NCBI GenBank assembly: GCA_051530055.1
Contig: CM121341.1
Span: 1,824,711 to 1,888,710 of the forward strand
Direction of reading: 5' to 3'
From: Neoechinorhynchus agilis
Taxonomy: Eukaryota; Animalia; Acanthocephala
DNA: 64,000 bases
Positions 4,484 through 58,686 of this stretch are shown here, one piece after another. The notes under the pieces are model-generated. The model saw only the letters and a list, made by a program, of their open reading frames with translations, was not told where the DNA came from and did not search any database. The position numbers and the translations under genes were made by a program. Positions within the stretch are counted from its first letter, which is position 1. Every line of letters begins with the position of its first letter.

Positions 4484-5061
4484 CATATCCCTAACCACCC
4501 AAATGCAATCTTCAACATATTTCGATCCAAATAAATACGTTTTATCCGGGAGGATTATGTTCATAACACATTTAAATCAATCATTCTGAAGAATTTTTTC
4601 GTGATCCTAAGTGGAAATTACAATCCTCTTCGGATTTTTATAATGTTGCAACGAAAGACAAAGCCAAGAATTTAATTGTATAAATCGACTCAGGAAATCT
4701 GGATGACGTCACAATAAGTTTCGTGCATTTCGTTACGAATGCGCCACTCACTTTATTGCAATGAAATACTCGCTTTTGTAAAATGTCTTAGTAAAATCTT
4801 AAATGTCTTTGACATATTTGGTTATTATATGCCATTTTGGTTGCAATATTTCGTTTAATTTCTTTAATCTTACTTCTGGCATTTGCTGAGGTTCGGTTTT
4901 CGGGGTTTTAGGCCAACTAAAACTCCTTAAATAGGACAAAAAATGGCTGACGTAAGCTTAGAGGCAAATCTTATTTAGACCTCCTTCGACTTTATAATTG
5001 AAACTGACTTTATGCGAATTTCTAAAACCGATTTGTTAGAAGAAATTAAGTTAAATTTGAT

Positions 5062-10205: not shown

Positions 10206-10259
10206 CCACCAAAATCCACTCGATGCTTACATGTCTCTTGATGATTAGAGATTGCCGAC
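10206..10259 (-). mobile_element. 54-bp fragment of a Penelope-like GIY-YIG coding sequence at the left edge of the satellite
   Basis: Identical to 31101..31154, which encodes part of SAISNHQETCKHRVDFGG on the minus strand. Confidence 0.85.
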
Positions 10260-13200
10260 TGAACCAGTTTTTGTTGATCCGCGATGGAGCCCTTTCGAAC
10301 GGCGCATCTCAGCACTCAATCAAGTTTTTCTCATTACTTTTTAACTGTACCAGTTTTTGTTGATCCGCGATGGAGCCCTTTCGATGCTCATTACTTTTTA
10401 ACTGTACCAGTTTTTGTTGATCCGCGATGGAGCCCTTTCGAACTGCGCATCTCAGCACTCAATCAAGTTTTTCTCATTACTTTTTAACTGTACCAGTTTT
10501 TGTTGATCCGCGATGGAGCCTTTTCGAACGGCGCATCTCAGCACTCTATCATTACTGTGCAATGCCAGGTTGATCCCCGATGGAGTCCACGCGCAAAGAT
10601 CGTATCTAAGCACTCAATCAAGTTTTTCTCATTACGTTTTAACTGTACCAGTTTTTGTTGTTGTGCAATGTCGAGTTGATCCGCGATGGATCCCTTTCGA
10701 ACGGCGCATCTCAGCACTCTATCAAGTTTTTCTCTTTACTTTTTAACTGGACCAGTTTTTGTTGTTGTGCAATGTCGAGTTGATCCGCGATGGATCCCTT
10801 TAGAACGGCGCATCTCGAGCACTCTATCAAGTTTTGCTGCTGCTTTTTAACTGTACCAGTTTTTGTTGTTGTGCAATGTCGAGTTGATCCGCGATGGATC
10901 CCTTTCGAACGGCGCTCTCAGCACTCTATCAAGTTTTTCTCATTACTTTTCCTTGTACCAGTTTTTGTTGTTGTGCAATGTCGAGTTCGTAGTCCGCGAT
11001 GGATCCTTTCGAACGGCGCATCTCAGCACTCTATCAAGTTTTTCTCATTACTTTTTAACTGGACCAGTTTTTGTTGTTGTGCAATGTCGAGTTGATCCGC
11101 GATGGAGCCCTTTCGAACGGCGCATCTCGGCACTCTATCAAGTTTTTCTCATTACTTTTTAACTGGACCAGTTTTTGTTGTAGTGCAATGTCGAGTTGAT
11201 CCGCGATGGATCCCTTTCGAACGGCTGCGTCTCAGCACTCCTATCAAGTTTTGCTCTTTACTTTTTAACTGTACCAGTTTTTGTTGTTGTGCAATGTCGA
11301 GTTGATCCGCGATGGATCCCTTTCGAACGGCGCATCTCAGCACTCTATCAAGTTTTTCTCATTACTTTTTAACTGTACCAGTTTTTGTTGTTGTGCAATG
11401 TCGAGTTGATCCGCGATGGATCCCTTTCGAACGGCGCATCTCAGCACTTTATCAAGTTTTTCTCATTACTTTTTAACTGGACCAGTTTTTGTTGTTGTGC
11501 AATGTCGAGTTGATCCGCGATGGATCCCTTTCGAACGGCGCATCTCAGCACTCTATCAAGTTTTTCTCTTTACTTTTTAACTGTACCAGTTTTTGTTGTT
11601 GTGCAATGTCGCGTTGATGATCCGCGATGGATCCCTTTCGAACGGCGCATCTCAGCACTCTATCAAGTTTTTCTCTTTACTTTTTAACTGTACCAGTTTT
11701 TGTTGATCCGCGATGGAGCCTTTTCGAACAGCGCATCTCATGCCTCTATCAAGTTTTTCTCTTTACTTTTAACTGGATTGATTTTGTTGTGCAATGTCGA
11801 GTTGATATGCGATGGATCCCTTTCAGTGCCGGCACATCTCAGCACTCTATCAAGTTTTGCTCTTTACTTTTTAACTGTACCAGTTTTTATTGTTGTCACA
11901 ATGTCGAGTTGATCCGCGATGGATCCCTTTCGAACGGCGCATCTCAGCACTCTATCAAGTTTTCTCTTTACTTTTTAACTGGACCAGTTTTTGTTGTTGT
12001 GCAATGTCGAGTTGATCCGCGATGGATCCCTTTAGAACGGCGCATCTCAGCACTCTATCAAGTTTTGCTCTTTACTTTTTAACTGTACCAGTTTTTGTTG
12101 CTGTGCAATGTCGAGTTGATCCGCGATGGATCCCTTTCGAACGGCGCATCTCAGCACTCAATCAAGTTTTTCTCTTTACTTTTTAACTGGACCAGTTTTT
12201 GTTGTTGTGCAATGTCGAGTTGATCCGCGATGGATCCCTTTCGAACGGCGCATCTCCGCACTCTTCTCTATCAAGTTTTCTCTTTACTTTTTAACTGTAC
12301 CAGTTTTTGTTGTTGTGCAATGTCGAGTTGATCAGCGATGGATCCCTTTCGAACGGCGCATCTCAGCACTCTGTCAAGTTTTTCTCTTTACTTTTTAACT
12401 GGACCAGTTTTTGTTGTTGTGCAATGTCGAGTTGATCCGCGATGGACCCCTTTCGAACGGCGCATCTCAGCACTCTATCAAGTTTTTCTCTTTACTTTTT
12501 AACTGTACCAGTTTTTGTTGTTGTGCAATGTCGAGTTGATCAGCGATGGATCCCTTTCGAACGGCGCATCTCAGCACTCTGTCAAGTTTTTCTCTTTACT
12601 TTTTAACTGGACCATTTTTTGTTGTTGTGCAATGTCGAGTTGATCCGCGATGGATCCCTTTCGAACGGCGCATCTCAGCACTCTATCAAGTTTTGCACTT
12701 TACTTTTTAACTGGACCATTTTTTGTTGTTGTGCAATGTCGAGTTGATCCGCGATGGATCCCTTTCGAACGGCGCATCTCAGCACTCTATCAAGTTTTGC
12801 ACTTTACTTTTTAACTGGACCAGTTTTTGTTGTTGTGCAATGTCGAGTTGATCCGCGATGGATCCCTTTCGAACGGCGCATCTCAGCACTCTATAAAGTT
12901 TTTCTCTTTACTTTTTAACTGGACCAGTTTTTGTTGTTGTGCAATGTCGAGTTGATATGCGATGGATCCCTTTCGAACGGCGCATCTCAGCACTCTATCA
13001 AGTTTTGCTCTTTACTTTTTAACTGTACCAGTTTTTGTTGTTGTGCAATGTCGAGTTGATCCGCGATGGATCCCTTTCCGAACGGCGCATCTCAGCACTC
13101 TATCAAGTTTTTCTCTTTACTTTTTAACTGGACCATTTTTTGTTGTTGTGCAATGTCGAGTTGATCCGCGATGGATCTCTTTCGAACGGCGCATCTCAGC

Positions 13201-16200
13201 ACTCTATCAAGTTTTTCTCTTTACTTTTTAACTGGACCAGTTTTTGTTGTTGTGCAATGTCGAGTTGATCCGCGATGGATCCCTTTCGAACGGCGCATCT
13301 CAGCACTCTATCAAGTTTTGCTCTTTACTTTTTAACTGGACCAGTTTTTGTTGTTGTGCAATGTCGAGTTGATCCGCGATGGATCCTTTCGAACGGCGCA
13401 TCTCAGCACTCTATCAAGTTTTCTCATTACTTTTTTTAACTGTACCAGTTTTTGTTGTTGTGCAATGTCGAGTTGATCCGCGATGGATCCCTTTCGAGCA
13501 GCGCATCTCAGCACTATAAGTTTTCTCTTTACTTTTTTAACTGGACCAGTTTTTGTTGTTGTGCAATGTCGAGTTGATCCGCGATGGATCCCTTTCGAAC
13601 AGCGCATCTCAGCACTCTATCAAGTTTTGCACTTTACTTTTTAACTGTACCATTTTTTGTTGTTGTGCAATGTCGAGTTGATCCGCGATGGATCCCTTTC
13701 GAGCAGCGCATCTCAGCACTCTATCAAGTTTTTCTCATTACTTTTTAACTGGACCAGTTTTTGTTGTAGTGCAATGTCGTGTTGATCCGCGATGGATCCC
13801 TTTCGAACGGCGCATCTCAGCACTCAATCAAGTTTTTCTCATTACTTTTTAACTGGACCATTTTTTGTTGTTGTGCAATGTCGAGTTGATCCGCGATGGA
13901 TCCCTTTCGAACGGCGCATCTCAGCACTCTATCAAGTTTTTCTCATTACTTTTTAACTGTACCAGTTTTTGTTGTTGTGCAATGTCGAGTTGATCCGCGA
14001 TGGATCCCTTTCGAACGGCGCATCTCAGCACTCTATCAAGTTTTTCTCTTTACTTTTTAACTGGACCATTTTTTGTTGTTGTGCAATGTCGAGTTGATCC
14101 GCGATGGATCCCTTTCGAACGGCGCATCTCAGCACTCTATCAAGTTTTTCTCTTTACTTTTTAACTGTACCAGTTTTTGTTGTTGTGCAATGTCGAGTTG
14201 ATCCGCGATGGATCCCTTTCGAACGGCGCATCTCAGCACTCTATCAAGTTTTTCTCGTACTTTTTAACTGTACCAGTTTTTGTTGTTGTGCAATGTCGAG
14301 TTGATCCGCGATGGATCCCTTTCGAACGGCGCATCTCAGCACTCTATCAAGTTTTTTTTTCTCTTTACTTTTTAACTGGACCAGTTTTTGTTGTTGTGCA
14401 ATGTCGAGTTGATCCGCGATGGATCCTTTCGAACGGCGCATCTCAGCACTCTATCAAGTTTTTCTCTTTACTTTTTAACTGGACCATTTTTTGTTGTTGT
14501 GCAATGTCGAGTTGATCCGCGATGGAGCCCTTTCGAACGGCGCATCTCAGCACTCAATCAAGTTTTTCTCTTTACTTTTTAACTGGACAATTTTTTGTTG
14601 TTGTGCAATGTCGAGTTGATCCGCGATGGATCCCTTTCGAACGGCGCATCTCAGCACTCAATCAAGTTTTTCTCTTTACTTTTTAACTGGACAATTTTTT
14701 GTTGTTGTGCAATGTCGAGTTGATCCGCGATGGATCCCTTTCGAACGGCGCATCTCAGCACTCAATCAAGTTTTTCTCTTTACTTTTTAACTGGACAATT
14801 TTTTGTTGTTGTGCAATGTCGAGTTGATATGCGATGGATCCCTTTCGAACGGCGCATCTCAGCACTCAATCAAGTTTTTCTCTTTACTTTTTAACTGTAC
14901 CAGTTTTTGTTGTTGTGCAATGTCGAGTTGATCCGCGATGGATCCCTTTCGAACGGCGCATCTCAGCACTCTATCAAGTTTTTCTCTTTACTTTTTAACT
15001 GGACCAGTTTTTGTTGTTGTGCAATGTCGAGTTGATCCGCGATGGATCCCTTTCGAACGGCGCATCTCAGCACTCTATCAAGTTTTTCTCTTTACTTTTT
15101 AACTGTACCAGTTTTTGTTGTTGTGCAATGTCGAGTTGATCCGCGATGCATCCCTTTCGAACGGCGCATCTCAGCACTCTATCAAGTTTTTCTCTTTACT
15201 TTTTAACTGTACCAGTTTTTGTTGTTGTGCAATGTCGAGTTGATCCGCGATGGATCCCTTTCGAACGGCGCATCTCAGCACTCTATCAAGTTTTTCTCTT
15301 TACTTTTTAACTGGACCAGTTTTTGTTGTTGTACAATGTCGAGTTGATCCGCGATGGATCCCTTTCGAACGGCGCATCTCAGCACTCTATCAAGTTTTTC
15401 TCATTACTTTTTAACTGGACCAGTTTTTGTTGTAGTGCAATGTCGAGTTGATCCGCGATGGATCCCTTTCGAACGGCGCATCTCAGCACTCAATCAAGTT
15501 TTTCTCTTTACTTTTTAACTGTACCAGTTTTTGTTGTTGTGCAATGTCGAGTTGATCCGCGATGGATCCCTTTCGAACGGCGCATCTCAGCACTCTATCA
15601 AGTTTTTCTCTTTACTTTTTAACTGGACCAGTTTTTGTTGTTGTGCAATGTCGAGTTGATCCGCGATGGATCCCTTTCGAACGGCGCATCTCAGCACTCT
15701 ATCAAGTTTTTCTCATTACTTTTTAACTGGACCAGTTTTTGTTGTAGTTCAATGTCGAGTTGATCCGCGATGGAGCCCTTTCGAACGGCGCATCTCAGCA
15801 CTCTATCAAGTTTTTCTCTTTACTTTTTAACTGGACCATTTTTTGTTGTAGTGCAATGTCGAGTTGATCCGCGATGGATCCCTTTCGAACGGCGCATCTC
15901 AGCACTCTATCAAGTTTTTCTCTTTATTTTTCAACTGGACCATTTTTTGTTGTTGTGCAATGTCGAGTTGATCCGCGATGGTGCCCTTTCGAACGGCGCA
16001 TCTCAGCACTCTATCAAGTTTTTCTCTTTACTTTTTAACTGGACCATTTTTTGTTGTTGTGCAATGTCGAGTTGATCCGCGATGGATCTCTTTCGAACGG
16101 CGCATCTCAGCACTCTATCAAGTTTTCTCTTTACTTTTTAACTGGACTACTTTTTGTTGTTGTGCAATGTCGAGTTGATCCGCGATGGATCCCTTTCGAA

Positions 16201-19200
16201 CGGCGCATCTCAGCACTCAATCAAGTTTTCTCTTTACTTTTTAACTGGGATAGTTTTTGTTGTTCAATGCAATGTCGAGTTGATCCGCGATGGATCCCTT
16301 TCCGAACGGCGCATCTCAGCACTCTATCAAGTTTTTCTCTTTACTTTTTAACTGTACCAGTTTTTGTTGTTGTGCAATGTCAGTTGATCCGCGATGGATC
16401 CCTTTCGAACGGCGCATTTCAGCACTCAATCAAGTTTTCTCTTTACTTTTTAACTGTACCAGTTTTTGTTGTTGTGCAATGTCGAGTTTCTGATCCGCGA
16501 TGGATCCCTTTTTCGAACAGCATCTCAGCACATTATCAAGTTTTTCTCATTACTTTTTAACTGTACCAGTTTTTGTTGTTGTGCAATGTCGAGTTGATCC
16601 GCGATGGATCCCTTTCGAACGGCGCATCTCAGCACTCTGTCAAGTTTTTCTCTTTAATTTTTAACTGTACCAGTTTTTGTTGTTGTGCAATGTCGAGTTG
16701 ATCCGCGATGGATCCCTTTCGAACGGCGCATCTCAGCACTCTATCAAGTTTTTCTCTTTACTTTTTAACTGGACCATTTTTTGTTGTAGTGCAATGTCGA
16801 GTTGATCCGCGATGGATCCCTTTCGAACGGCGCATGTCAGCACTCTATCAAGTTTTTCTCTTTACTTTTTAACTGGACCATTTTTTGTTGTTGTGCAATG
16901 TCGAGTTGATCCGCGATGGATCCCTTTCGAAGGACCAGTTTTTGTTGTTGTGCAATGTCGAGTTGATCCGCGATGGATCCATCAAGTTTTTTCGAACTTT
17001 TAACTGGATCTCAGCACTCAGTTGATCAAGTTTTTCTCTTTACTTTTTAACTGGACCATTTTTTGTTGTTGTGCAATGTCGAGTTGATCGGCGCGCATCT
17101 GGAGTTTTTCTCTTTACTTTTTAACTGGACCATTTTCAACGGCGAGTTGCATCCCTCGAACGGCGCATCTCAGCACTCTATCAAGTTTTTCTCTTTACTT
17201 TTTAACTGGACCATTTTTTGTTGTTGTGCAATGTCGAGTTGATCCGCGATGGATCCCTTTCGAACGGCGCATCTCAGCACTCTATCAAGTTTTTCTCTTT
17301 ACTTTTTAACTGGACCATTTTTTGTTGTTGTGCAATGTCGAGTTGATTGATGGATCCCTTTCGAACGGCGCATCTCAGCACTCTATCAAGTTTTTTCTTT
17401 ACTTTTTAACTGGCGCAGTTTTTGTTCTGTGCAATGTCGAGTTGATCCGTCGATGGATCCCTTTCGAACGGCGCATTTCTCAAGTTTTTCTCTTTACTTT
17501 TTAACTGGACCATTTTTTGTTGTTGTGCAATGTCGAGTTGATCCGCGATGGATCCCTTTCGAACGGCGCATCTCAGCACTCTATCAAGTTTTTCTCTTTA
17601 CTTTTTAACTGGACCAGTTTTTGTTGTTGTGCAATGTCGAGTTGATCCGCGATGGATCCCTTTCGAACGGCGCATCTCAGCACTCTATCAAGACCATTTT
17701 TTTTTTCTCTTTACTTTTTAACTGGACCAGTTTTTATCAAGTTGCAATGTCGAGTTGATCCGCGATGGATCCCTTTCGAACGGCGCATCTCAGCACTCTA
17801 TCAAGTTTTTCTCTTTACTTTTTAACTGGACCATTTTTTGTTGTTGTGCAATGTCGAGTTGATCCGCGATGGATCAGCCCTTTCGAACGGCGCATCTCAG
17901 CACTCTATCAAGTTTTTCTCTTTACTTTTTAACTGTTTTTCCATTTTTTGTTGTTGTGCAATGTCGAGTTGATCCGCGATGGATCCCTTTCGAACGGCGC
18001 ATCTCAGCACTCTATCAAGTTTTTCTCATTTTTAACTGACCAGTTTTTGTTTGTGCAATGTCGAGTTGATCCGCGATGGATCCCTTTCGAACGGCGCATC
18101 TCAGCACTCTATCAAGTTTTTCTCTTTACTTTTTAACTGGACCATTTTTTGTTGTTGTGCAATGTCGAGTTGATCCGCGATGGATCCCTTTCGAACGGCG
18201 CATCTCAGCACTCTATCAAGTTTTTCTCTTTACTTTTTAACTGGACCAGTTTTTGTTGTTGTGCAATGTCGAGTTGATCCGCGATGGATCCCTTTCGAAC
18301 GGCGCATCTCAGCACTCTATCAAGTTTTTCTCTTTACTTTTTAACTGGACCAGTTTTTGTTGTTGTGCAATGTCGAGTTGATCCGCGATGGATCCCTTTC
18401 GAACGGCGCATCTCAGCACTCTATCAAGTTTGAACGGCTCTCAGCACTTTACTTTTTAACTGGACCATTTTTTGTTGTTGTGCAATGTCGAGTTGATCCG
18501 CGATGGATCCCTTTCGAACGGCGCATCTCAGCACTCTATCAAGTTTTTCTTTACTTTTTAACTGGACCATTTTTTGTTGTTGTGCAATGTCGAGTTGATC
18601 CGCGATGGATCCCTTTCGAACGGCGCATCTCAGCACTCTATCAAGTTTTTCTCTTTACTTTTTAACTGTACCAGTTTTTTGTTGTTGTGCAATGTCGAGT
18701 TGATCCGCGATGGATCCCTTTCGAACGGCGCATCTCAGCACTCTATCAAGTTTTTCTCTTTACTTTTTAACTGGACCATTTTTTGTTGTTGTGCAATGTC
18801 GAGTTGATCCGCGATGGATCCCTTTCGAACGGCGCATCTCAGCACTCTATCAAGTTTTTCTCTTTACTTTTTAACTGGACCAGTTTTTTTGTTGTGCAAT
18901 GTCGAGTTGATCCGCGATGGATCCCTTTCGAACGGCGCATCTCAGCACTCTATCAAGTTTTTCTCTTTACTTTTTAACTGGACCAGTTTTTGTTGTTGTG
19001 CAATGTCGAGTTGATCCGCGATGGATCCCTTTCGAACGGCGCATCTCAGCACTCAAGTTTTTCTCTTTACTTTTTTCATTTTTTGTTGTTGTGCAATGTC
19101 GAGTTGATCCGCGATGGATCCCTTTCGAACGGCGCATTCAGCACTCTATCAAGTTTTTCTCTTTACTTTTTAACTGGACCATTTTTTGTTGTTGTGCAAT

Positions 19201-20715
19201 GTCGAGTTGATCCGCGATGGATCCCTTTCGAACTTTTTAACTGGACCATTTTTTGTTGTTGTGCAATGTCGAGTTGATCCGCGATGGATCCCTTTCGAAC
19301 GGCGCAGTGCATCTCAGCACTCTATCAAGTTTTTCTCTTTACTTTTTAACTGGACCAGTTTTTGTTGTTGTGCAATGTCGAGTTGATCCGCGATGGATCC
19401 CTTTCGAACGGCGCATCTCAGCACTCTATCAAGTTTTTCTCTTTACTTTTTAACTGGACCATTTTTTGTTGTTGTGCAATGTCGAGTTGATCCGCGATGG
19501 ATCCCTTTCGAACGGCGCATCTCAGCATTTCATCAAGTTTTTCTCTTTACTTTTTAATCACCATTTTTTTTGTTGTGCAATGTCGAGTTTACGATGGATT
19601 TCGAACGGCGCATCTCAGCACTATCAGTTTTCTCTTTTTTTTTGACCAGTTTTTGTTGTTGCAATGTCGAGTTGATCCGCGATGGATCCCTTTCGAACGG
19701 CGCATCTCAGCACTCTATCAAGTTTTTCTCTTTACTTTTTAACTGGACCATTTTTTGTTGTTGTGCAATGTCGAGTTGATCCGCGATGGATCCCTTTCGA
19801 ACGGCGCATCTCAGCACTCTATCAAGTTTTTCTCTTTACTTTTTCTGGACCAGTTTTTGTTTAGTCAATGTCGAGTTTACTTTCGAACGGCGCATCTCAG
19901 CACTCTGTCAAGTTTTTCTCTTTACTTTTTAACTGACCATTTTTTGTTGTTGTGCAATGTCGAGTTGATCCGCGATGGATCCTTTCGAACGGCGCATCTC
20001 AGCACTCTATCAAGTTTTTCTTTACTTTTTAACGGCGCAGTTTTTCTGTTGTGCAATGTCGAGTTGATCAAGTTTTTCTCTTTACTTTTTAACTGGACCA
20101 TTTTTTTGTTGTTGTGCAATGTCGAGTTGATCCGCGATGGAACGGCGCATCTCAGCACTCTATCAAGTTTTTCGAACGGCGCAGTTTTTGTTGTTGTGCA
20201 ATGTCGAGTTGATCCGCGATGGATCCCTTTTCTCAGCACTTATCAAGTTTTTTCTTTACTTTTTAACTGGACCAGTTTTTGTTGTTGTGCAATGTCGAGT
20301 TGATCCGCGATGGATCCCTTTCGAACGGCGCATCTCAGCACTCTATCAAGTTTTTCTCTTTACTTTTTAACTGGACCAGTTTTTGTTGTTGTGCAATGTC
20401 GAGTTGATCCGCGATGGATCCCTTTCGAACGGCGCATCTCAGCACTCTATCAAGTTTTTCTCTTTACTTTTTAACTGGACCATTTTTTGTTGAGCACTTT
20501 ATCAAGTTTTTCTCATTACTTTTTAACTGACCAGTTTTTGCTGTTGTGCAATCAGTTTCCGCGATGGATCCCTTTCGAATGGTGCATCTCAGCACTCTCT
20601 ATCAAGTTTTTGTGCTCGAGTTGATCCGCGATGGATCCCTTTTCGAACGGCGCATCTTTCAACTGGACCAATCCCAGCTGTAGTGCAACGCCGGGTTGAT
20701 CCGCGATGGAGTCCA
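10260..20715. repeat. Satellite DNA, 104-bp monomer, about 100 copies
   Basis: atccgcgatg at 14931, 15035, 15139 (period 104). Consensus gttgatccgcgatggatccctttcgaacggcgcatctcagcactctatcaagtttttctctttactttttaactggaccagtttttgttgttgtgcaatgtcga. Confidence 0.98.
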
Positions 20716-21462
20716 TGCAAGCACGGGGTCCCCATCTCCGTCCCAAAAATAACTTTGACAAATTGGGAATCCAATGGATCCCCCGCTAGATGTCAAACTA
20801 GCGAGAACAGATACTACACTTTGATCTTAGCCTTTCGGCAAGAAGCGATAGCTTGGAATAGGGCACTCGAGTTTTAACTCTAAACATATATCCGAATTAA
20901 AAACTTTCTGATTCAATACGTAATTCGAAGACATTTGCTGAAAGAACACAAATTCCCTTAATTTTTTTTATTGTTTGTGATGAAATTAATTATTGTGTTT
21001 TAAATTTTTCTTATATGTTTTTTGTGTATGCCATAGTTTGGACGGATTCGTTTTATTGTTTCGTATTAGAATTCTAATTCTGATTTGACGGTTGTTTCAC
21101 TTAATTCATTCTTTTAGCCGTAATGTTCGTGAATTGCAATCGTTTTCCATTCTCTTTGACCCATTGAAGTGAATGTGGCGAGTGTTGGGCGATTGAGTTT
21201 TTTGATAGGGTTTGCGACTGGTGAACTAAGAATCACTCGGAGTTGATTAAACTGATTACTCCTGATCTCTGGTTTTCCATTCACGTAAATAGCAATCGAC
21301 TTAGGCTTCCAAATCGGAACGCATAAAGCTGTCAGTCTTAGTGGTTTTTCGAACTCAGGCAAAAATTGGTTGAGTGTTTTTCCGGTTTTCTAATAGTAAA
21401 GATCGATCACAATTTATGATTTGATTGTACGTTGGCGAATCCTGTCCCCGGTTTGTGAAATA

Positions 21463-30475: not shown

Positions 30476-30756
30476 TGATCCATTCCAATACTACCTTTAA
30501 TACCCTTATAATATTCTCAAAAATCGATTCGTTTCAATGCACGGAAAATTCGTGAGTTCCCACTCATTACGTTTATTCAAGCTGGTTGAAATGTTTTTCT
30601 CTCGATGGCCACGATTGTTGAGAAAGGAGATGCCTTGCGTGAAAATATTTTAATAACTGATCTTTCCACTTCATAGAAAAAGAAAGAAGATTTCTTTTGC
30701 GATGTTTTTTCTCTCTCGAAAAAGCTCAAAGAACAAAAATCTTGGAATAATTCAGG

Positions 30757-32075
30757 AAATATAATTTTGGTGAACATACTCCCGGTCATAACCTATTTGA
30801 TTTTGATTTATTTAAGATATTTCGAAGGAGGTAACTTCGCCTCACCAGTCATCTAAAAATATGTTTTTACCACTCAGGTTTTAAGCTCGAGTGCACGGGA
30901 TAGCCAAACCCGAAGCTCGGGGCCAATTATCCGACTACGTTTTTTCCATGATTTTAGCATTAATTTTTTAAACGTCGCTGGCTGGAAGTCTCAAGCTAAA
31001 ATTAGCTTTATTTCCTTCGATCGTGTTGGACACAGCGATGTGTAAGGCCTCCAAAACAAGCCGCCTTTTTAAGTTTTGTTCTATTTCTATAAAGTCGGTG
31101 CCACCAAAATCCACTCGATGCTTACATGTCTCTTGATGATTAGAGATTGCCGACGAATGCTAAAATCGACTGCAGACTTGCTTATGTTGAGCGACCCTCT
31201 TCTCGATGCCTTGCATCGTTTGTCCGATATAGACTTTCTCACACTGTTCACAGTGCATTCGGTAGATCCCATGAGTCAGCTCAATTCTACCCTTCCTCTT
31301 GAATGTGCTTCTGAGAGCGATTCCTTTAGTATTGTATAGACGAATTCCAGCCTTCTTAACTTATAATGGAGTAAATCATTTGATTCGTGTCATATCAATG
31401 AAGTGCACTCTTTCGAAGCATACAGGCTCTGCAGACGATTTTTTGTTGTTTTGCGGATGATAGTTTCTGCCTCTGATTCCACGGTCTATAATCCATTTGG
31501 AATATCCCCTCATTTTTAGCTCCTGGACTATCCTCTCCCTTTCCTTACTCCACGCCAATCGAGTAGATGAGATAAGAAAAGCTCTTCGGAAGGAGGACAT
31601 TACAACCGAGATTTTATACTTCATCGGTTTTTGAGTTGACCAGTGTGGTGGTCCGCATAGTAGATTCTCCTTACGATAAAGTGACGTGCCAACTTTGCCT
31701 TGTGCCGACCGCTTTACCAGGACGTCCAGGAAAGAGACATCACCGTTGTTGTTCTCTTCTTTGAATGTCCACTGTATGTGTGGATCTTGATTGTTAAGTT
31801 CAGCATTTAGTAAATCTCTGTTGTTGTTTGAATAAGTCAAAATGAATACATCGTCCACATAACGCCACCGCCGATTTACATGACTATGAAGCTCCAAGAA
31901 AATGTACTCGCAATGCCGCATGTAAATGTCGGCCAAGGTCGGGGCAATCTCTAATCATCAAGAGACATGTAAACATCGAGCGGATTTTGGTGGCACCAAC
32001 TTACTCGCGAAATATTTTCAATAAATCAAAATCAAATAGGTTATGACCGGGAGTATGTTCACCAAAATTATATTT
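30757..32075 (-). mobile_element. 5'-truncated Penelope-like retroelement: RT + GIY-YIG pseudogene, 3' pLTR-like hammerhead relic and a 5' inverted segment
   Basis: RT: PTLADIYM, WRYVDDVF, VSFLDVLV, LYRK, GYS. Same frame continues to GIYRMHCEQCEKVYIGQTMQGIEKRVAQH and EQNLKRRLVLEALHI, with nonsense codons at 31378, 31363, 31162. Core CTGGTGA..GAAATATC at 30848..30816. 31945..32075 is an inverted copy of 3' sequences. Confidence 0.92.
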
Positions 32076-32119
32076 TGACTTACCCGAAAGATTTTCTATC
32101 GATGACTTCAGGAAATGTT

Positions 32120-33860
32120 TGTGTTAAAAGCATTAAACCGTAGAATTTTATTTGTTGTTTATTTTTTAGATAAATGCCTGATTCCGTAACACAACTCTTT
32201 GAATACTTCACGGAATCATCGATAGAAAATCCTTCGGGTTAGTCAAAGTATAATTTTGGTGAAAATGCTCCCGGGTTACACATTTAAAACTTACAAGCAA
32301 TGACTGATGAGTCGAGGTTACCTCGGGAAATATCTCCAATAAATCAAATATACTATTACCGGGAGTATTTTCACCCAAATTATGCTTCTATAGATGTTTG
32401 TGTTAAAAGCATCAAACAGTAGAATTTTATTTGTTGTTTATTTTTCAGATAAATGCCTGATTCCGTAACACAACTCTTTGAATACTTCAGGGAATCATCG
32501 ATAGAAAATCCTCCGGGTTAGTCAAAGTATAATTTTGGTGAAAATGCTCCCGGGTTACACATTTAAAACTTACAAGCAATGACTGATGAGTCGAGGTTAC
32601 CTCGGGAAATATCTCCAATAAATCAAATATACTATTACCGGGAGTATTTTCACCCAAATTATGCTTCTATAGATGTTTGTGTTAAAAGCATCAAACAGTA
32701 GAATTTTATTTGTTGTTTATTTTTCAGATAAATGCCTGATTCCGTAACACAACTCTTTGAATACTTCAGGGAATCATCGATAGAAAATCCTCCGGGTTAG
32801 TCAAAGTATAATTTTGGTGAAAATGCTCCCGGGTTACACATTTAAAACTTACAAGCAATGACTGATGAGTCGAGGTTACCTCGGGAAATATCTCCAATAA
32901 ATCAAATATACTATTACCGGGAGTATTTTCACCCAAATTATGCTTCTATAGATGTTTGTGTTAAAAGCATCAAACAGTAGAATTTTATTTGTTGTTTATT
33001 TTTCAGATAAATGCCTGATTCCGTAACACAACTCTTTGAATACTTCAGGGAATCATCGATAGAAAACCTTGTTAGTCAAAGTATAATTTTGGTGAAAATC
33101 TCCCGGGTTACTTTAAAACTTACAACAATGACTGATGAGTCGAGGTTACCTCGGGAAATATCTCCAATAAATCAAATATACTATTACCGGGAGTATTTTC
33201 ACCCAAATTATGCTTCTATAGATGTTTGTGTTAAAAGCATCAAACAGTAGAATTTTATTTGTTGTTTATTTTTCAGATAAATGCCTGATTCCGTAACACA
33301 ACTCTTTGAATACTTCAGGGAATCATCGATAGAAAATCCTCCGGGTTAGTCAAAGTATAATTTTGGTGAAAATGCTCCCGGGTTACACATTTAAAACTTA
33401 CAAGCAATGACTGATGAGTCGAGGTTACCTCGGGAAATATCTCCAATAAATCAAATATACTATTACCGGGAGTATTTTCACCCAAATTATGCTTCTATAG
33501 ATGTTTGTGTTAAAAGCATCAAACAGTAGAATTTTATTTGTTGTTTATTTTTCAGATAAATGCCTGATTCCGTAACACAACTCTTTGAATACTTCAGGGA
33601 ATCATCGATAGAAAATCCTTCGGGTTAGTCAAAGTATAATTTTGGTGAAAATGCTCCCGGGTTACACATTTAAAACTTACAAGCAATGACTGATGAGTCG
33701 AGGTTACCTCGGGAAATATCTCCAATAAATCAAATATACTATTACCGGGAGTATTTTCACCCAAATTATGCTTCTATAGATGTTTGTGTTAAAAGCATCA
33801 AACAGTAGAATTTTATTTGTTGTTTATTTTTTAGATAAATGCCTGATTCCGTAACACAAC
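32120..33860 (+). repeat. Tandem array of six 279-bp units (one is 270 bp) plus a partial seventh; each has a hammerhead-like core and the MED21 acceptor and first 8 codons
   Basis: gataaatgcctgattccg at 32169, 32448, 32727, 33006, 33276, 33555, 33834. CTGATGA cores at 32304, 32583, 32862, 33132, 33411, 33690. Confidence 0.97.
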
Positions 33861-34249
33861 TCCAACTCCTCTTTAGCAAGCAAATAGAACTGATGTGCAA
33901 CACAATTGGATCTTCCCTACTAAAACAAGTACAATCGACCCCAAATGGAACCGAATCCCCAACGACAGCGTCCATACAAATCCATACTCTGATCTCAAAT
34001 GCAGTTGCTATAAAAGAAATAATAGAGAAATTACCTGATGCTCCTGAACGAAGGAGTGTCGACAGCCTTCACGCCGAGTTTTCCGAAGCACAAGAAGCAA
34101 CGAATGTAGTTCAGAAGGAATTGACAGATCTAAGAGACAACATCCATAAAATGCGAATGAGCATTGAGAAGTCCTTGGATTTTTTCGGACGTGATGTAGA
34201 ACTTAATGGAAAAGCCAAGCGAAACGATAATAATGATTCACAAACTTAG
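33839..34249 (+). CDS. MED21: Mediator subunit 21 (MED21/SRB7), 136 aa
   Basis: MPDSVTQLQ..LMCNTIG and LISNAVAIKEIIEKLPD parallel MED21 MADRLTQLQ..QFCNAIG and LIARTAKDIDVLIDSLPS; C-terminal coiled coil; expected length. Confidence 0.85.
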   Translation: MPDSVTQLQLLFSKQIELMCNTIGSSLLKQVQSTPNGTESPTTASIQIHTLISNAVAIKEIIEKLPDAPERRSVDSLHAEFSEAQEATNVVQKELTDLRDNIHKMRMSIEKSLDFFGRDVELNGKAKRNDNNDSQT

Positions 34250-43072: not shown

Positions 43073-43890
43073 TCCAACTCTATCATCCCCAAGGATTTTC
43101 TCTAGATGATTTTCGTCGTTATTTTGAGTTGTGGTGATCATCATTTCTCGGATAAAACATATTTCGATCCAATAAAATATGTTTTATCCAAGAAATTATG
43201 ATAACCACATCTCCAACTCTATCATCCCCGAGGATTTTCTCTAGATGATTTTCGTCGTTACTTTTTTGCTGTGGTGATCATCATTTCTCGGATAAAACAT
43301 ATTTCGATCCAATAAAATATGTTTTATCCAAGAAATTATGATAACCACATCTCCAACTCTATCATCCCCGAGGATTTTCTCTAGATGATTTTCGTCGTTA
43401 CTATGAGTTGTGGTGATCATCATTTCTCGGATATAACATATTTCGATCCAATAAAATATGTTTTATCCAAGGGATTATGATAACCACATCTCCAACTCTA
43501 TCATCCCCAAGGATTTTCTCTAGATGATTTTCGTCGTTACTATGAGTTGTGGTGATCATCATTTCTCGGATAAAACATATTTCGATCCAATAAAATATGT
43601 TTTATCCAAGGGATCAAAATAACCACATCTCCAACTCTATCATCCCCAAGGATTTTCTCTAGATGATTTCCCTCCTTATTTGGAGTTGTAGCGATCATCA
43701 TTTCTCGGATAAAACATATTTCGATCCAATAAAATATGTTTTATCCAAGGGATCAAAATAACCACATCTCCAACTCTATCATCCCCAAGGATTTTCTCTA
43801 GATGATTTTCGTCGTTACTATGAGTTGTGATGATCATCATTTCTCGGATAAAACATATTTCGATCCAATAAAATATGTTTTATCCAAGGG
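43073..43890. repeat. Second array of about 6 x 139-bp family A units
   Basis: gatccaata at 43166, 43306, 43445, 43584, 43723, 43862; same orientation as, and near-identical to, 3505..4337. Confidence 0.95.
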
Positions 43891-44752
43891 AGTATAATCA
43901 CCATAAATCGAACTCTAAAAGAACTAAAGAGAAACCCAAAAACATGATTGTATGAGCAAAACACTCAGCTGCTCAATATCTCAATCTTAAATTTATGATA
44001 TTTTTCTTATATGGTCCATTCATACGAAGCCAATGCTTCCATTTCTAAAAAATGGTGGAAAGTGTTGTTCGAATTTAAACGTATCCACGTTTTTTTTGTG
44101 ATACTCAGAAATACAGGAGATCAACGCATGGAAAGTTCAACGGAAAGATCTTTTGGGCGAGACAGAATGCGTACAAAGATTTCAATGTCTGATTCTCGCT
44201 CGCAATGAATACACCGTCGATTCACCGTCATTTCTAGTTCATGGCCTACGACGAAGACATAGACGTCGTAGCAACTCTTTGCAACTCACATTTCCATCTC
44301 GCTGCATCATCATCGTTTGCATCCAGCTGCATCGATTAAGACCAAACGAAGGAGACGGGATGACAAATTGGAGGGGCTGATACAGGAAGGAAGAAGAGTG
44401 GAAAGCACTTTTCGTACACGTTGCATCAATCGTAAAAAGGAGCAACTAACTTTGATCACCGATCTTATTTTTCCTCTCGCATTCACTTTCGATCAAAATG
44501 TCGTCCAAGGTGTATTTACAAACCAAAAAAGAGAAGAAAATAATCTTTCGAACGATTGCAACAACAATTTTTTCGCGATGGTTAGGTTTGCATATTCACG
44601 TGTAATTTTTCAAATGCAAAAGGACCCAAGAACAGAGAAGTTTGCGCTAATGAGTTATAAAAACCGTGCTAATACAAACTGAAACTAACGTTAAAGCTAA
44701 CAAATTGAAAGTGGTTGGGAATATATCATCATTTATTGGAAGCAATTAGGCA

Positions 44753-46085
44753 GACGATAAAAACGGACATGTAAAATCATTCAAAAACTGATTTGATTGC
44801 AGAAAAAAAGAGAAAATCCATTTAGACAATTGACGAATTCTATTTATTGATAGTAATTATTAAAATTGACGATACAAACAGACATGTAAAATTTTTCAAA
44901 AACTGATTTGATTGCAGAAAAAAGAGAAAGTCCATTTACACAATTGACGAATTCTATTTATTGAGAGTAATTATTAAAGTTGACGATACAAACCGACGTG
45001 TAAAATCATTCAAAAACTGATTTGATTGCAGAAAAAAGAGAAAGTCCATTTAGACAATTGACGAATTGTATTTATTGATAGTAATTATTCAAATTGAGGA
45101 TAAAAACGGACCTGTAAAATCATTCAAAAAACTGATTTGATTGCAGAAAAAGAGAAAGTCCATTTAGACAATTGACAAATTCATTTTATTGGTAGTGATT
45201 AGGCAAATTGACGATAAAAACGGACATGTAAAATGTTTACACAACTGATATGATTGCAGAAAAAGATAAAATCCATCTACACAATTGACGAATTGTATTT
45301 ATTGAGAGTAATTACTCAAATTGAAGATACAAACGGACATGTAAAATAATTCAAAAACTGATTAAATAACGAAAAAAAAGAGAAAATCCATTTAGACAAT
45401 TGACGAGTTATTTTTGTTGATAGTGATTAGGAAAATTGACGATAAAAACGGACATGAAAAATCATTCAAATACTGATTTGATTGCAGAAAAAAAAGAAAA
45501 AATCCATCTACACAACTGACGAGTTCTTTTAATGGTAGTGATTAGGCAAATTGACGATACAAACAGACATGTAAAATCTTTCAAAAACCAACTATATAAC
45601 GAAAAAAGGGGAAAATCCATTTACACAATTGACGAATTCTATTTATTGATAGTAATCATTAAAATTGACGATAAAAACGGATCTGTAAAATCATTAGAAA
45701 ACTGATTTGATTGCAGAAAAAAATAAAATCCATTTAGACAATTGACGAGTTCTTTTTATTGGCAGTGATTAACAAAATTGACGATACAAACGGACATGTA
45801 AAATCATTCAAAAACTGATTAAATAACGAAAAAAAGGAGAAAATCCATTTAGACAATTGACGAATTCTATTTATTGATAGTAATTATTCAAATTGACGAT
45901 AAAAACGGACATGTAAAATCATTCAAAAACTGATTTGATTGCAGAAAAAAATAAAATCCATTTAGACAATTGACGAGTTCTTTTTATTGGCAGTGATTAT
46001 GCAAATTGACGATAAAAACGGACATGTAAAATCATTCAAAAACTGATTAAATAACGAAAAAAAGAGAAAATCCATTAACACAAAT
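44753..46085. repeat. Tandem array of about 12 x 114-bp diverged units
   Basis: Unit starts at 44753, 44868, 44982, 45096, 45210, 45323, 45438, 45553, 45667, 45780, 45895, 46008. Confidence 0.95.
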
Positions 46086-46481
46086 GACATTAAAATTAGC
46101 TTAGGTCGATCAATGCAGGTCAGCGGCTCTGCAGCTAAAATTATTCTCGAATGGAGAGAACTCGATTGAGGTCACATAAAATACGTGAGCATCAAAATGA
46201 TTTTAATCGAAGTTCCTTATAAATTAATTCTTTCGTACGGGTGGAATCACTGTTTTTGCGAATTTTAGCTTAATTTCAACCGAGTGCAGATTTTTGGAAT
46301 AATTGAAGACGTTTTTTCTGGGAGCGATAATTCGGCGTTGATTTAATTTTTTGTTTAGGGAATATTTATTGGGCTTTTTAGAAACACTCCAAATCTTAAA
46401 AGATAATGTTCTGTGGTGCTGCGGTTTTCCTCACGCTGGCAGTATTCCCTCGTTGTACTGCGAGGCGGTGGCGAAGTAATT

Positions 46482-48515: not shown

Positions 48516-48723
48516 ATTGTTATTTGTTGATAGGAGAGGTGAATGAAATTCAGATTTTTATTGGATATTTCGATCCACTATCTCGGATCTTCTTCAGCGA
48601 TTGCTTGTAAGTAACACATATTTAAAAACTTACAAGCAATCGCTGAAGAAGATCCGAGATAGTGGATCGAAATATCCAATAAAATCTGAATTTCATTCAC
48701 CTCTCTTATCAACAAATAACAAT
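48516..48723. repeat. Near-perfect fold-back (97/96-bp arms, 15-nt loop) with an intact hammerhead catalytic-core motif on each strand
   Basis: Arms differ by 1 mismatch and 1 indel. Plus core CTGAAGA-A-GATCC-GAGATAGT-GGATC-GAA-ATAT-C at 48643..48676. Confidence 0.93.
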
Positions 48724-49153
48724 GAATTATCTTTCCAACGTAAACAATTGTGTATGAATATTTAAATGAACCCCAGATAACAATATCGACTAATTTACGC
48801 TCGATTATTGTTAATTCTTCCGTGTTGATAGCCATATCACATTGGAGATGTGGTGATTATAATCGCCTGAATAAAACGTATTTTATTGAATTGAGATATT
48901 TGTAAGGAGGTTGTGTTAGTTTTTTATGCTATATTACTCGTGATTGTCATGGTTCGGGACTTATTCGTTCGAAATATCTCAATAAAAAATATTTTGTATC
49001 ACCGCATCTCCAACTTTATCATCCCCAAGAATTTTTAAAGAATATCCTTTTTTTTATCAACGTACAATCTTATATCGCATCGAAAAGTGGTCCTTAGTAA
49101 TAATTTTTAGCAACCAATGGCCCCATGGATCCCTGAATGAGGGCAACTATAAC

Positions 49154-49343
49154 TTTCAATTAGCGATATTCACTGAGAAATAGATTTATATTGAAAATTT
49201 TCGGCCTTTTCGTTGGCCTTCTTCAGTCAGATTGCTTGTAGGATTTTTAAAAACTTACAAGCAATCTGACTGAAGAAGGCCAACGAAACGGCCGAAAAAT
49301 TTTCAATATAAATCTATTTCTGAGTGAATATCGCTAATTGAAA
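49154..49343. repeat. Near-perfect fold-back (arms about 87 bp) with a hammerhead core motif on each strand
   Basis: Arms 49154..49240 and 49256..49343. Plus core CTGAAGA-A-GGCC-AACGAAAC-GGCC-GAAAAATTTTC at 49270..49304. Confidence 0.93.
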
Positions 49344-49555: not shown

Positions 49556-52500
49556 ATGCAAACTGCATCCACTAGTGATGAGCCCATGACTTCAATGGAA
49601 CTCGATTACGAACTGGACGCGAATGGAAGTATGGAATCACTCGACTGTATCTTGTTTTCCTCTCAATCGATTCATGACAACGATTGCCGATCATTTATAA
49701 TCGAACCGATACATAGCGCACCGCAAAGTTTACAGGACGAAGCCACTACCTTATCATCGCCACTGACGACCACTACAGAACAGAGTGAAGATCCTGAGCT
49801 CGTTATAATGCGGGAAATGGCTTTAAATTCGATAACGAAGACGCCTTCTTTCAATGACGACGATGATGATCATGAGTTAGAGATGATGCGAAAGCTGGCA
49901 CTGAACTCATTGAAGGGTTTCGTTGAACACGACGAAGAACTCAGTCTTGAGCGGATAAGAGAAGAAGCACTCGCTTCGATTCGAACGAGAGCAAGGAAAC
50001 AGCATCCTAGACATGGAAGAGAGAAAAGGCGACGACGTGAACTTGAAGAAGGAGAGTGTTCAAGTGATTCATTGTGGTCGAGTACTACCGACAATGAAGA
50101 TGAAAGCAGCAGTAATAGCTTTAATCAGAATTCAAAAAATTCAGCTGAACCTTTAAGATCGAGAAGTCAAACATCGGTGCTATCTTCAACTGAATCTGGA
50201 CTTAGTATCTATCGAAGGCAACCGTCCAAGTATTCCTTCCGTAAAATCAATATTTCTCCACAAATGTTCTGCTCACTTAACATGCAAATCGATATTTCCG
50301 ATGACGAGAATGATGGCGATGATGAGATTGATGGCGACGATGAAGATTATGATTTTGAAGTTAGTTCCTCTTACACGAGTAAGCGAAGTGATCTGGAACA
50401 CGAATCCAAGTTTGGTCAAACGAGTGAAGAAATCGAAATCCACGATCAAATCAAAACAGTGCGCAAAAGTATTGAACAAAATAGGTAGGTGATGCTGTCG
50501 AAATTATCCACGGATTCACAATATTCATCTCATAATTTTTCATCTTTTTGAGTTATAAAAGATTATGGAAAATTGTTCGGTCGAGTAGCTCCCAGAAGAT
50601 AAATTATACGCATTTTCAATATTCTTACAAAACCGTCTTCCTTTTGAGTAACTTAAATTGCTTGCATATTTTCGGATTTATATCATTTCCTAATCTGATT
50701 CACCGATTTATATATTTTCAACTGAATTTTTAATTACAAACCATAAACTCTGAAAGCTTTAAATTTTCGAAATTTTGGATTTATGAACTTTTTTACTATT
50801 CTTTTGGGAGCCATTAGTTTCCCGTGTAAGCCTTTAAATATTGAAACTTTAAATATACTTCATCTTAAAGTGTCTCCAACTTCGGAACCGTTACCATTTC
50901 TGAATTATGTTTTATTTGGACTTTAAATTGACACCATATCGCACTGCTCACCATCATTTCTTTTGAAACTTTAGCTCTCAAAGTGATGAGATTGTGGCTC
51001 GTATTAAGGACATCGAGGAGCAGATTGAGAGTCAGCAAATGTTACGTTCTCAATCGTCCCATATTCTTGAAGACCTTCATCGTATGATCGAGAATTTACA
51101 AAAGCAAGTTCGTAGTCACGAGCGTACAATTGCTGGGTTTAGCGAATCAATCAATCAACTCGAAAGTGAGGTTTGTATTTTGTGTGGGGCCTCTAAACTC
51201 ACATGTATTTACATGGCCATTCTCCAATTCGCCACAGTGCACTTCTCATCGGAGAAAAATCGAACAAATCAATGCGCAATCATCGGAGAAACTAGAAGAG
51301 CTAGATCATCTCAATCGCTGTCTTGCTAAAAGTAAACTCGATCGAATTCCGTCGTACTTGCCATCGAACGATCACCTCTGGAGCTTCTTGTGTCAGGAAG
51401 ATGACGATACTCTCGCACTAATCGATCGAATATCTCCCCATGGAAAATCCGATATCTTTAAAGAACTCTTCCATAACGGTCGTCTAGAGTTCGCAGAAAG
51501 TCAACGCCGGTTTAATGAACAAAACGAATACAATTGGATACGTTATGGGCGGCACACTTACGAGCCAACCGAAATAAACTTTATGATCCTATCTGAAGGA
51601 AATATTCCTTTGCTTAATGACGATACCGATGAGTCACGTCGACTCTCTCATAAGGATTTTGGCCGAACATCCATTCAACGATCAAACGGGTGTTTAACTA
51701 CGATTCCTAAATTGGTCATTCCCGAAACCTTTAAGTCTCCTTTGGTGAGCAATGCTCGAGATTTTTCTGTTGTAATGAACGAACTTGAAAGTCGGTATTA
51801 TGACTTTGGTGACTCTATCAAAACAATGGAAACAAAAATTAGGGAAGATCCACATGATGAAAATTCATGGTTACGTTTGTGTCATCTTCATTATACGCGA
51901 TCGCAATCACCTAAAGTTGTTTTGGGAGTTCTTGCTCGAGCTGTAGAGGTTCATACTGAAAGTTCAAAGATTTGGTCTTTGTATTTAAGAGCACTGAACG
52001 TTGTCGACAAGTCCAAGATTGATGAGGTCATTCCAAGTGTTATGAAATGGGTCAATCGGGATTTATACTTGCTCACATGTACGGTAAGTATAATTGCTAT
52101 GAGCTTAATCATCTTAATTTTTATCACTTCTCAACTCATACAAACCCTTTTTTTCTCCCATCGTTAGTTAATGGAATTAGACCGCAAACAAGTAGTCCGG
52201 TCCCACGCAAATACAATAATCGACAACGCTGGGAGAGATGAGAATTTCTGGCGTCTCTTAGTCCGCGTGATATCGTGCATCGATAAAACCGAATCGGCTG
52301 AAGTAGCTTATGATCTTCTTACATGCCACTCTACAGGGGAACTCTTTGACAAATGGGACCACATTGAACTTCTTCGCTTGTACATCCTTGCATTTGCGCA
52401 TTTACCATCATTCTTTTGTTCATCATGTGAAGAAGCTATCGAGTGGATACAACGTGGATTTTATGTAGATTGGCACGTCGGTAGAAGATCAGTAGTTAAT

Positions 52501-58424: not shown

Positions 58425-58686
58425 CAATCTCAAATTGGTTCTAATGCCGAATTGTTCATGTCCTTCATCATGACGAAAAATACAAGTGATTTATTGAATG
58501 CGATATTTCGCAATCAAACAGTCGCGTGCCTCGTCAACTTCATCCTCAGTTTGCAGCTACGTTTTTTCAACGTCTTTAATAAAAAATATATTACCGGGTA
58601 GAATGGATATTGGTCGATGGTCAATAAAATGACCCTGCAACTTATCACTGATGACCTTTCCTGTATAAAAGAATCATTCGGCTTCC

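Follow-up and report, generated by a model that had tools for sequence, protein, structure and literature searches.

Penelope-like elements (PLEs) encode a reverse transcriptase (RT) followed by a C-terminal GIY-YIG domain (PMC8557442), and their insertions are marked by an inverted, 5′-truncated copy beside the main one and by a 30–40-bp tail that is confined to one end, with a hammerhead close to the 3′ terminus of the element (Craig et al. 2021, PMC8557442). The PLE protein cleaves and extends both strands, the tail corresponding to the sequence that separates two start points of reverse transcription (Frangieh et al. 2024, PMC11167929), and PLEs tend to insert beside existing PLE copies (PMC6765202). 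Five features define the minimal hammerhead ribozymes (min-HHRs) of these elements: an additional nucleotide that separates A9 from position 10.1, a long helix II of 6–8 bp, a highly conserved G10.1-C11.1 pair, a palindrome at 15.2-16.2 in place of a stable helix III, and a helix I of only 2–5 bp (Cervera & de la Pena 2014, PMC4209133). In vitro, min-HHRs were reported to cleave poorly and only as dimers or trimers (PMC4209133), or only with the element protein, and to be dispensable for insertion (PMC11167929). AT-rich tandem units of a few hundred bp, each with one type-I hammerhead and a palindromic short helix III, are known from non-LTR retrozymes, newt satellite 2 and schistosome Sm-alpha (Cervera & de la Pena 2020, PMC7229834). 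Here, we analyse a 279-bp tandem array that adjoins a probable MED21 gene in the eoacanthocephalan Neoechinorhynchus agilis (Acanthocephala), within a 64-kb stretch of chromosome CM121341.1 near 1.85 Mb (GCA_051530055.1; hereafter the window). Arrays that form by microhomology-mediated tandem duplication and unequal exchange show a novel junction at a microhomology, flanks that stay in register, divergent edges and a homogenised interior.

A sequence-only reading of this DNA had taken the array for a retrozyme-like, undescribed chimera of a hammerhead and the 5′ end of MED21. We propose that the array is probably the result of a DNA-level, in-place tandem amplification of a 279-bp block, which comprises the footprint of a PLE insertion and the host DNA on either side of it. 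This departs from the earlier claim on several grounds: 101 of the 279 bp are collinear host DNA, the insert is an ordinary PLE micro-insertion, its hammerhead is of the minimal type and no second copy of the unit was found in the sequence available.

The array repeats a block of host DNA that holds a PLE footprint

Tandem Repeats Finder (TRF) returned a single array at this locus, at 32115–33862 (period 279, 6.3 copies, 98% matches, score 3377), whose layout on the forward strand is T-(hostL-P-T)x6. Host DNA makes up 101 bp (36%) of each unit, namely the 83 bp of T and the 18 bp of hostL, and the remaining 178 bp are P. Six units start at the anchor ATGTTTGTGTTAAAAGC (32115, 32394, 32673, 32952, 33222 and 33501), followed by a seventh, partial copy of 83 bp at 33780. 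T (32394–32476 in unit 2; the other copies at 32115–32197, 32673–32755, 32952–33034, 33222–33304, 33501–33583 and 33780–33862, all forward) spans MED21 from position −59 to codon 8, with TTTTCAG, ATAA and the ATG at 32453 in unit 2. Indeed, TTTT(C/T)AG-ATAA-ATG CCT GAT TCC GTA ACA CAA CTC is present in all array copies, so that TRF and the alignment of the units agree with the earlier claim of an acceptor-like site, an ATG and MED21 codons 1–8 in each unit. Also as claimed, the seventh repeat start enters the real open reading frame (ORF): its frame extends into an ORF of 136 aa (33839–34249), while the frames of the other six copies open an ORF of 22 aa, or 79 aa in unit 4.

The second host segment, hostL (32477–32494 in unit 2; also 32198–32215, 32756–32773, 33035–33052, 33305–33322 and 33584–33601, all forward), reads TTTGAATACTTCAGGGAA and was identified through the DNA on the left side of a neighbouring PLE, here called PLE-A. 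There, the host sequence at 30732–30759 (forward), which contains AATTCAGGAA, the first copy of the PLE-A target-site duplication, is homologous to the end of T plus hostL: in a local alignment, the last 10 nt of T together with hostL (AACACAACTCTTTGAATACTTCAGGGAA) match 30732–30759 (AACAAAAATCTTGGAATAATTCAGGAAA) at 23 of 28 positions. The score of 31 compares with 16.7 +/- 2.3 in shuffled sequences (maximum 27), none of 500 shuffles being as good. We therefore regard hostL as the original upstream neighbour of T in the host DNA, with P placed between the two. T is in register with the real MED21 start, and the array both begins and ends with T; the sole non-native junction is CAACTC|TTTGAAT (in its 30-bp form ACACAACTC|TTTGAATACTTC), at which MED21 codon 8 meets hostL and whose parental sequences share the imperfect microhomology AACAnAAnTC. 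Units that carry flanking host DNA in register with both flanks argue for duplication in place and not for the insertion of a mobile multimer.

The differences between units are few and ordered. Units 2, 3 and 5 have the same sequence, from which unit 6 departs at a single site and unit 1 at five sites; unit 4 is 270 bp long, with two substitutions and four small deletions. TTTTTAG is common to the first and the seventh T, the inner T copies carrying a derived C; likewise, the first and the sixth P share CCTTCGGG, whose T is also found in PLE-A, and the inner P copies carry a derived C. Ancestral alleles at the edges and derived ones inside point to unequal exchange, not to assembler stutter or a single inserted multimer.

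Next to T and hostL stands P itself, which consists of two arms in opposite orientation. The inverted arm (32495–32561 in unit 2, reverse strand) is a PLE 3′ end with a 29-nt tail, 5′-truncated before the hammerhead, and matches 32047–32119 at 85–90%. The forward arm (32562–32672 in unit 2, forward strand) is made up of the conserved leader TTTAAAACTTACAAGCA, the hammerhead and a PLE 3′ end whose tail is not complete, and is 100% identical across all six units. An inverted repeat of 25 bp had been described in the sequence-only reading; it is real and longer, since 29 nt at 32525–32553 pair with 32638–32666 (90% complementary, 84 nt apart). As a computed fold, the monomer RNA is strongly self-paired owing to these arms (−77.6 kcal/mol, z −5.8). 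The homology to the 3′ end of the neighbouring PLE also held, with 78% identity over 92 bp (unit positions 186–269 against 30852–30761, E 2e-14), and P as a whole matches the PLE-A 3′ end at 78–91%. An ATG in P overlaps the hammerhead core (AATGACTGATGAG; 32580–32672), and the peptide of its frame, REY(V/F)HQNY.LT.P.DFLSM, is common to PLE-A (32047–32104) and the P arms; a protein search with the peptide from the PLE arms gave no match. This position of the ATG recalls the Anolis PLE, whose ORF opens within the hammerhead, reverse transcription being initiated ~110 nt into it.

PLE-A, which lies immediately to the left of the array, shows what a longer insertion at an equivalent site looks like. 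Its long arm (30760–31941, reverse strand, boundaries uncertain by 2–3 nt) is 5′-truncated and tailless. On the minus strand it encodes a YVDD RT remnant and then GIYRMHCEQCEKVYIGQT..., a GIY-YIG domain (Pfam PF01541, E 1.5e-5, above the cut-off), interrupted by three in-frame stops and followed by the 3′ UTR; the 5′ part is missing. An RT with a C-terminal GIY-YIG identifies the neighbour as Penelope-like, as had been claimed, and its protein is 54% identical to an N. agilis protein (P0002) from another chromosome of the same assembly. The short arm (31943–32104, forward strand) is inverted relative to the long arm (30757–30824 against 32008–32075, 97%; 31092–31151 against 31943–32002, 95%) and lacks 267 bp that match 30825–31091; these are not an intron, as GT..AG ends are absent. 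At its end it carries 29 extra nt, TGACTTACCCGAAAGATTTTCTATCGATG, as a tail (32076–32104). The whole insertion is flanked on both sides by A(A/C)TTCAGGAA (30749–30758 and 32105–32114), a 10-bp target duplication whose second copy, ACTTCAGGAA (32105–32114, forward strand), matches the first at 9 of 10 positions. The hammerhead of PLE-A, which lies in the 3′ UTR (30816–30848, reverse strand), is degenerate, with CUGGUGA (A6 to G) and damage at the helix II / GAAA junction.

By its anatomy, P is a double-ended PLE micro-insertion of the published kind. In common with described PLE insertions (PMC8557442, PMC11167929), the arms stand head to head with their 3′ ends facing the host, P and PLE-A each have a 29-nt tail on one arm and a second PLE lies adjacent; in contrast to them, P measures only 178 bp in total, and its later six-fold amplification included 101 bp of the adjoining host DNA. 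P is not a deletion derivative of PLE-A: its tail (TGACTAACCCGGAGGATTTTCTATCGATG) is on the inverted arm only and that of PLE-A on the forward arm only, their divergence is 10–22% compared with ~4% for T, and P has a leader and an intact hammerhead core, both absent from the PLE-A forward arm.

Each unit carries a minimal hammerhead of the PLE type

The motif CTGATGAGTCGAGGTTACCTCGGGAAATATC occurs exactly six times in the window, once per unit and nowhere else (none expected in shuffles), which bears out the claim of one hammerhead per unit. In unit 2 it extends from C3 to C17 at 32583–32613, on the forward strand and thus on that of MED21, as CUGAUGA-G-UCGAGG-UUA-CCUCGG-GAA-AUAU-C, with predicted cleavage after 32613; the other copies are at 32304–32334, 32862–32892, 33132–33162, 33411–33441 and 33690–33720 (forward). 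In context, the sequence reads ACAAGCAAUGA-CUGAUGA-G-UCGAGG-UUA-CCUCGG-GAA-AUAU-C|UCCAAUAAAUC.

All six units have the catalytic boxes CUGANGA and GAAA with H17 (CUGAUGA ... GAAA-UAU-C). The array motif has an extra G between A9 and 10.1, where other copies in the genome have an extra A or G. Its helix II is 6 bp long (UCGAGG/CCUCGG), and those of other PLE families (GAUCC/GGAUC, GGCC/GGCC and GCAAGG/CCUUGC) are all paired as well; since these sequences differ and pairing is nevertheless kept, the structure appears conserved in the lineage. Helix III is the palindrome AUAU only (A15.1-U-A-U16.1), so that the fold is possible only as a dimer, which the 279-nt tandem spacing permits; this matches the dimer design proposed earlier and fits the published min-HHRs (PMC4209133). 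Helix I had been called weak, and rightly so, as it can form only 2 bp (U1.1-A2.1 and C1.2-G2.2), a marginal helix, although the value reported for Drosophila virilis is also 2 bp.

The exception is position 10.1-11.1, where the array has U.G in place of the conserved G10.1-C11.1. A G-C pair at this position, together with the extra nucleotide, is kept in the motifs at 48628–48684 and 49249–49302, in their mirror copies and in that of L002, a 21-kb stretch of the same genome (~11131–11165). G10.1 is part of the A9/G10.1 metal site of the hammerhead, and the array hammerhead is therefore expected to be weaker. A cofold of two hammerhead segments gave no dimer, as is expected of a helix of four A-U pairs, and is therefore uninformative. 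With Rfam at gathering thresholds, the whole window yielded the U2 snRNA only, and at E<=10 no hammerhead was returned between 29.5 and 34.5 kb; because Rfam also misses the better min-HHRs at 48.4–49.45 kb, this negative result on the array carries no weight.

Compared with PLE min-HHRs (PMC4209133), the array motif shares the CUGAUGA and GAAA boxes, the unpaired nucleotide after A9, the 6-bp helix II, AUAU as the whole of helix III, C17 and, marginally, the very short helix I. It also shares the distance of ~60–90 nt from the 3′ end of an RT/GIY-YIG element and the frequent occurrence of solo motifs and opposite-strand pairs (also Lunse, Weinberg & Breaker 2017, as cited in PMC6765202). What differs is the U.G at 10.1-11.1 and the location of the motif inside an amplified block with host gene sequence. 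By primary sequence, the array motif is a family-typical PLE minimal hammerhead with the min-HHR features other than G10.1-C11.1, helix I being marginal. It is probably a passenger that came with the PLE; on transcripts reading through towards MED21, it could cleave at best weakly, as a dimer of adjacent units or aided by the PLE protein.

A model of duplication in place

From the anatomy of the unit, its homologies, its junctions and the distribution of alleles, we infer the following order of events. First, the 101-bp host block would have been duplicated, the first CAACTC|TTTGAAT junction forming via AACAnAAnTC, which is present in MED21 codons 6–8 and again ~28 bp upstream of the insertion site. 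Second, P would have landed between hostL and T in the second host copy. Two cDNAs primed from both strands of the break would account for the head-to-head arms, a reverse transcription able to start at two adjacent sites for the ~30-nt tail on one arm, and the forward arm would have imported the PLE's own minimal hammerhead. Third, the P-bearing unit would have been amplified, unequal exchange expanding the array and homogenising its inner units. Fourth, in a separate event, a different PLE, PLE-A, would have entered the leftmost copy at its paralogous hostL|T site, with its 10-bp target duplication. This duplication-first order would explain why P and PLE-A join the host at the same nucleotide and yet differ by 10–22%, with opposite tails and different content.

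The model is in line with the composition of the surrounding DNA. About a third of the window, or ~20 kb out of 64 kb, consists of tandem arrays with periods of 104–279 bp, and local tandem amplification is therefore common in this genome. Three other head-to-head PLE micro-insertions were found, at 48516–48723 (57-nt arms, 100% complementary), ~48840–49030 and 49154–49343. With such insertions and tandem arrays both present in the window, the two ingredients of the MED21 array are routine in this genome. Compared with arrays made by microhomology and unequal exchange, nothing essential is different here, the MED21 block happening to hold a ribozyme-bearing transposon footprint and a start codon.

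Several observations weigh against this model. The AACAnAAnTC microhomology is imperfect (8 of 10 positions), and the rightmost part of the forward arm of P (CTTCTATAG) fits neither a tail remnant nor host DNA cleanly. Moreover, two different PLEs have their host junction at one and the same nucleotide (after CAGG(G)AA), which needs either a site preference or paralogous targets. The differences between units (~12 events) all fall within T, hostL or the inverted arm and none in the 94-bp hammerhead-bearing forward arm, for which the chance is ~1–3% if differences are uniform; this invariance could hint at constraint, and could equally reflect homogenisation or uncorrected errors of Oxford Nanopore (ONT) reads concentrated in unit 4. 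Two 139-bp PLE-derived arrays elsewhere in the window demonstrate that units of this kind can form arrays at more than one locus, so that an amplification route linked to PLEs may be at work. Finally, the copy number rests on a single assembly of pooled worms.

Alternative explanations

The closest rival is a chimeric non-LTR retrozyme, whose array RNA would be cut as dimers into 279-nt monomers and circularised, and reverse-transcribed by a PLE that thereby builds or spreads the array and modulates MED21. We consider this unlikely. The format of the unit does fit, as the array has AT-rich tandem units within the ~150–450 bp of retrozymes with one hammerhead each, the 279-bp period and low GC lie within the 170–400-nt range of animal retrozymes (PMC7229834), and the palindromic short helix III is shared with the retrozymes, newt satellite 2 and Sm-alpha described above. 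The hammerhead has the orientation of the gene, its arm is invariant between units, the monomer RNA has the self-pairing described above, and vertebrate retrozymes are derived from PLE pseudo-LTRs according to a 2026 preprint. However, retrozymes have a canonical type-I hammerhead with a helix I of ~6 bp, a helix II of 4 bp and contacts between loops 1 and 2, while that of the array is minimal, of a type with very low or protein-dependent published activity in vitro, with a 2-bp helix I and U.G at 10.1-11.1 where other copies have G-C. Retrozymes also consist of element sequence only and occupy many loci, whereas a third of the array unit is the 5′ end of the neighbouring gene, collinear with both flanks, and a single locus is known: in a search for copies away from MED21, no other unit was found in the 64-kb window or the 21 kb of L002, nor was the exact hammerhead pattern among metagenome contigs. 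The T-hostL junction needs a prior DNA duplication, since rolling-circle cDNA alone cannot make it, and the edge units keep ancestral alleles.

It is similarly improbable that the assembly is at fault, with a false copy number or a partly false array and a true locus of one or two units. Illumina reads and ONT R9.4 reads from ~50 pooled worms were combined by MaSuRCA into a hybrid assembly, with a little HiFi data and Hi-C scaffolding (PMC12690905), units 2, 3 and 5 are identical and the four clustered deletions of unit 4 resemble unpolished long-read errors. Against this, the retained ONT reads (at least 5 kb; PMC12690905) greatly exceed the 1.75 kb of the array in length, collapse or expansion errors do not produce the ordered pattern of ancestral edges and derived interior, and the T-hostL junction, at minimum, must exist in the reads.

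A nascent chimeric retrozyme, in which a PLE hammerhead made tandem by host duplication would cut read-through RNA into linear or circular 279-nt RNAs, each with a decoy MED21 acceptor, ATG and 22-codon ORF, that tune MED21 or become mobilisable, strikes us as very unlikely. Serial PLE integration, with each unit a separate insertion beside the previous one and host DNA duplicated each time, is highly improbable: PLEs do insert into or beside copies and form tandems (PMC8557442, PMC11167929, PMC6765202), PLE-A landed at an equivalent site and the window holds the 139-bp PLE-derived arrays, but a target duplication flanks its insert on both sides, whereas P lies between hostL and T and the T-hostL block is in non-native order, which staggered cuts cannot generate, and six independent insertions are not expected to be 100% identical in the forward arm with the same truncation points. 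For the same geometric reason, P being inside the block and not at its edge, a target-site duplication is ruled out as the source of the repeated host block.

The probable MED21 gene

The ORF at 33839–34249 (forward strand, single exon, 136 aa) is highly divergent, and its assignment to MED21 is probable, the earlier identification standing in this qualified form. Med21 (PF11221) is the best Pfam family for this ORF, at a score below the cut-off (E 8e-4; 20.1 bits against 37.3). Residues 1–24 align without gaps to residues 1–24 of human MED21, with 10 of 24 identical. The N-terminus fits the pattern M-x-D-x-[LV]-TQLQ ... CN-x-IG, and the length is near the ~140 aa expected. Among 1.8 billion representative proteins, no homologue was found apart from the window's own truncated model, and a sequence search of the PDB gave no significant match. 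An exact look-up found neither the 136-aa MED21 nor a 56-aa ORF from the minus strand of the unit on record.

The public gene model starts at Met19 and has 118 aa. It thus omits 18 codons (33839–33892), including the repeated eight-codon start segment, and these hold the only clear MED21-like motif. Repeat masking preceded gene prediction in the N. agilis assembly (PMC12690905) and is a likely cause of this late start.

Upstream, the array and PLE-A stand between the MED21 ATG and ~1.4 kb of intergenic DNA shared with a divergent gene. A read-through transcript from upstream would be predicted to carry six decoy acceptor-like sites and ATGs, each opening a 22-codon ORF, with one hammerhead between decoys. 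Spliced-leader trans-splicing at the TTTTCAG sites found no support; the one paper found on it reports trans-splicing in bdelloid but not in monogonont rotifers and has nothing on acanthocephalans.

Other PLE copies and tandem arrays in the window

The three micro-insertions at 48.5–49.3 kb cluster 0.2–1 kb upstream of an ORF at 49556–50488, and two of them carry well-formed min-HHRs on both strands. They form near-perfect long hairpins with sub-threshold Rfam ‘miRNA precursor’ matches and may be sources of small RNAs.

The PLE copies also differ in the sequence before the hammerhead core. Those linked to an ORF (30846–30857, reverse strand, and L002 11122–11134) have TTTTAG|AT(A)GA directly before the core, and all micro-insertions (32288–32299, 48627–48638 and 49252–49263) have the conserved leader AACTTACAAGCA|AT... 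This difference suggests unspliced and spliced forms, with micro-insertions that would copy a short spliced RNA, beginning at the 5′ end of that RNA, and it resembles the contrast reported for D. virilis Penelope; a donor exon for the leader was not found in the available sequence.

The 139-bp arrays (3504–4337 and 43073–43917) have ~6 copies each, are 92% alike and lie in unrelated surroundings. The repeated unit pairs two PLE 3′ arms in inverted orientation, is related to the ~48840–49030 insertion and has no hammerhead core. The two arrays represent a dispersed satellite of PLE origin or, alternatively, a transposed 6-mer. Other tandem DNA comprises a ~10-kb satellite with a 104-bp period (10258–20540), whose start adjoins a PLE-A endonuclease fragment (10197–10259; 63 bp, 97% identical), and further arrays at 44753–46089 (114 bp) and 58687–64000 (141 bp, extending past the window end). 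Just past the end of the 104-bp satellite lies a full-length U2 snRNA gene (20658–20849, reverse strand; Rfam 139.8 bits). PLE-like debris at 4340–4620 and 58506–58549 (reverse strand) includes the CCTACAAGCAAT leader, ATATTTCGATCC motifs and, beside the 141-bp satellite, the 3′-end motif GAAATATC..CAATAAATC.

Discussion

The likeness of the array to a retrozyme is a resemblance and not membership, and the array is a curiosity assembled by established processes rather than a novel class of ribozyme element. As such, it provides an example of how double-ended PLE micro-insertions scatter minimal hammerheads through an invertebrate genome, and of how such a footprint can be amplified together with host DNA. 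With it, PLE min-HHRs with covarying helices are also documented in an eoacanthocephalan. An amplified footprint of this kind can mislead annotation, as seen in the public MED21 model that begins at Met19.

Processing of the MED21 upstream transcript by the hammerheads is conceivable. If cleavage did occur in vivo, the locus would be a natural case in which tandem ribozymes separate an essential Mediator gene from a promoter region, and it would qualify as a possible step on the path from PLE ends to retrozymes. If the array were a nascent retrozyme, it would show such elements in the course of emerging from PLE ends and taking up host sequence.

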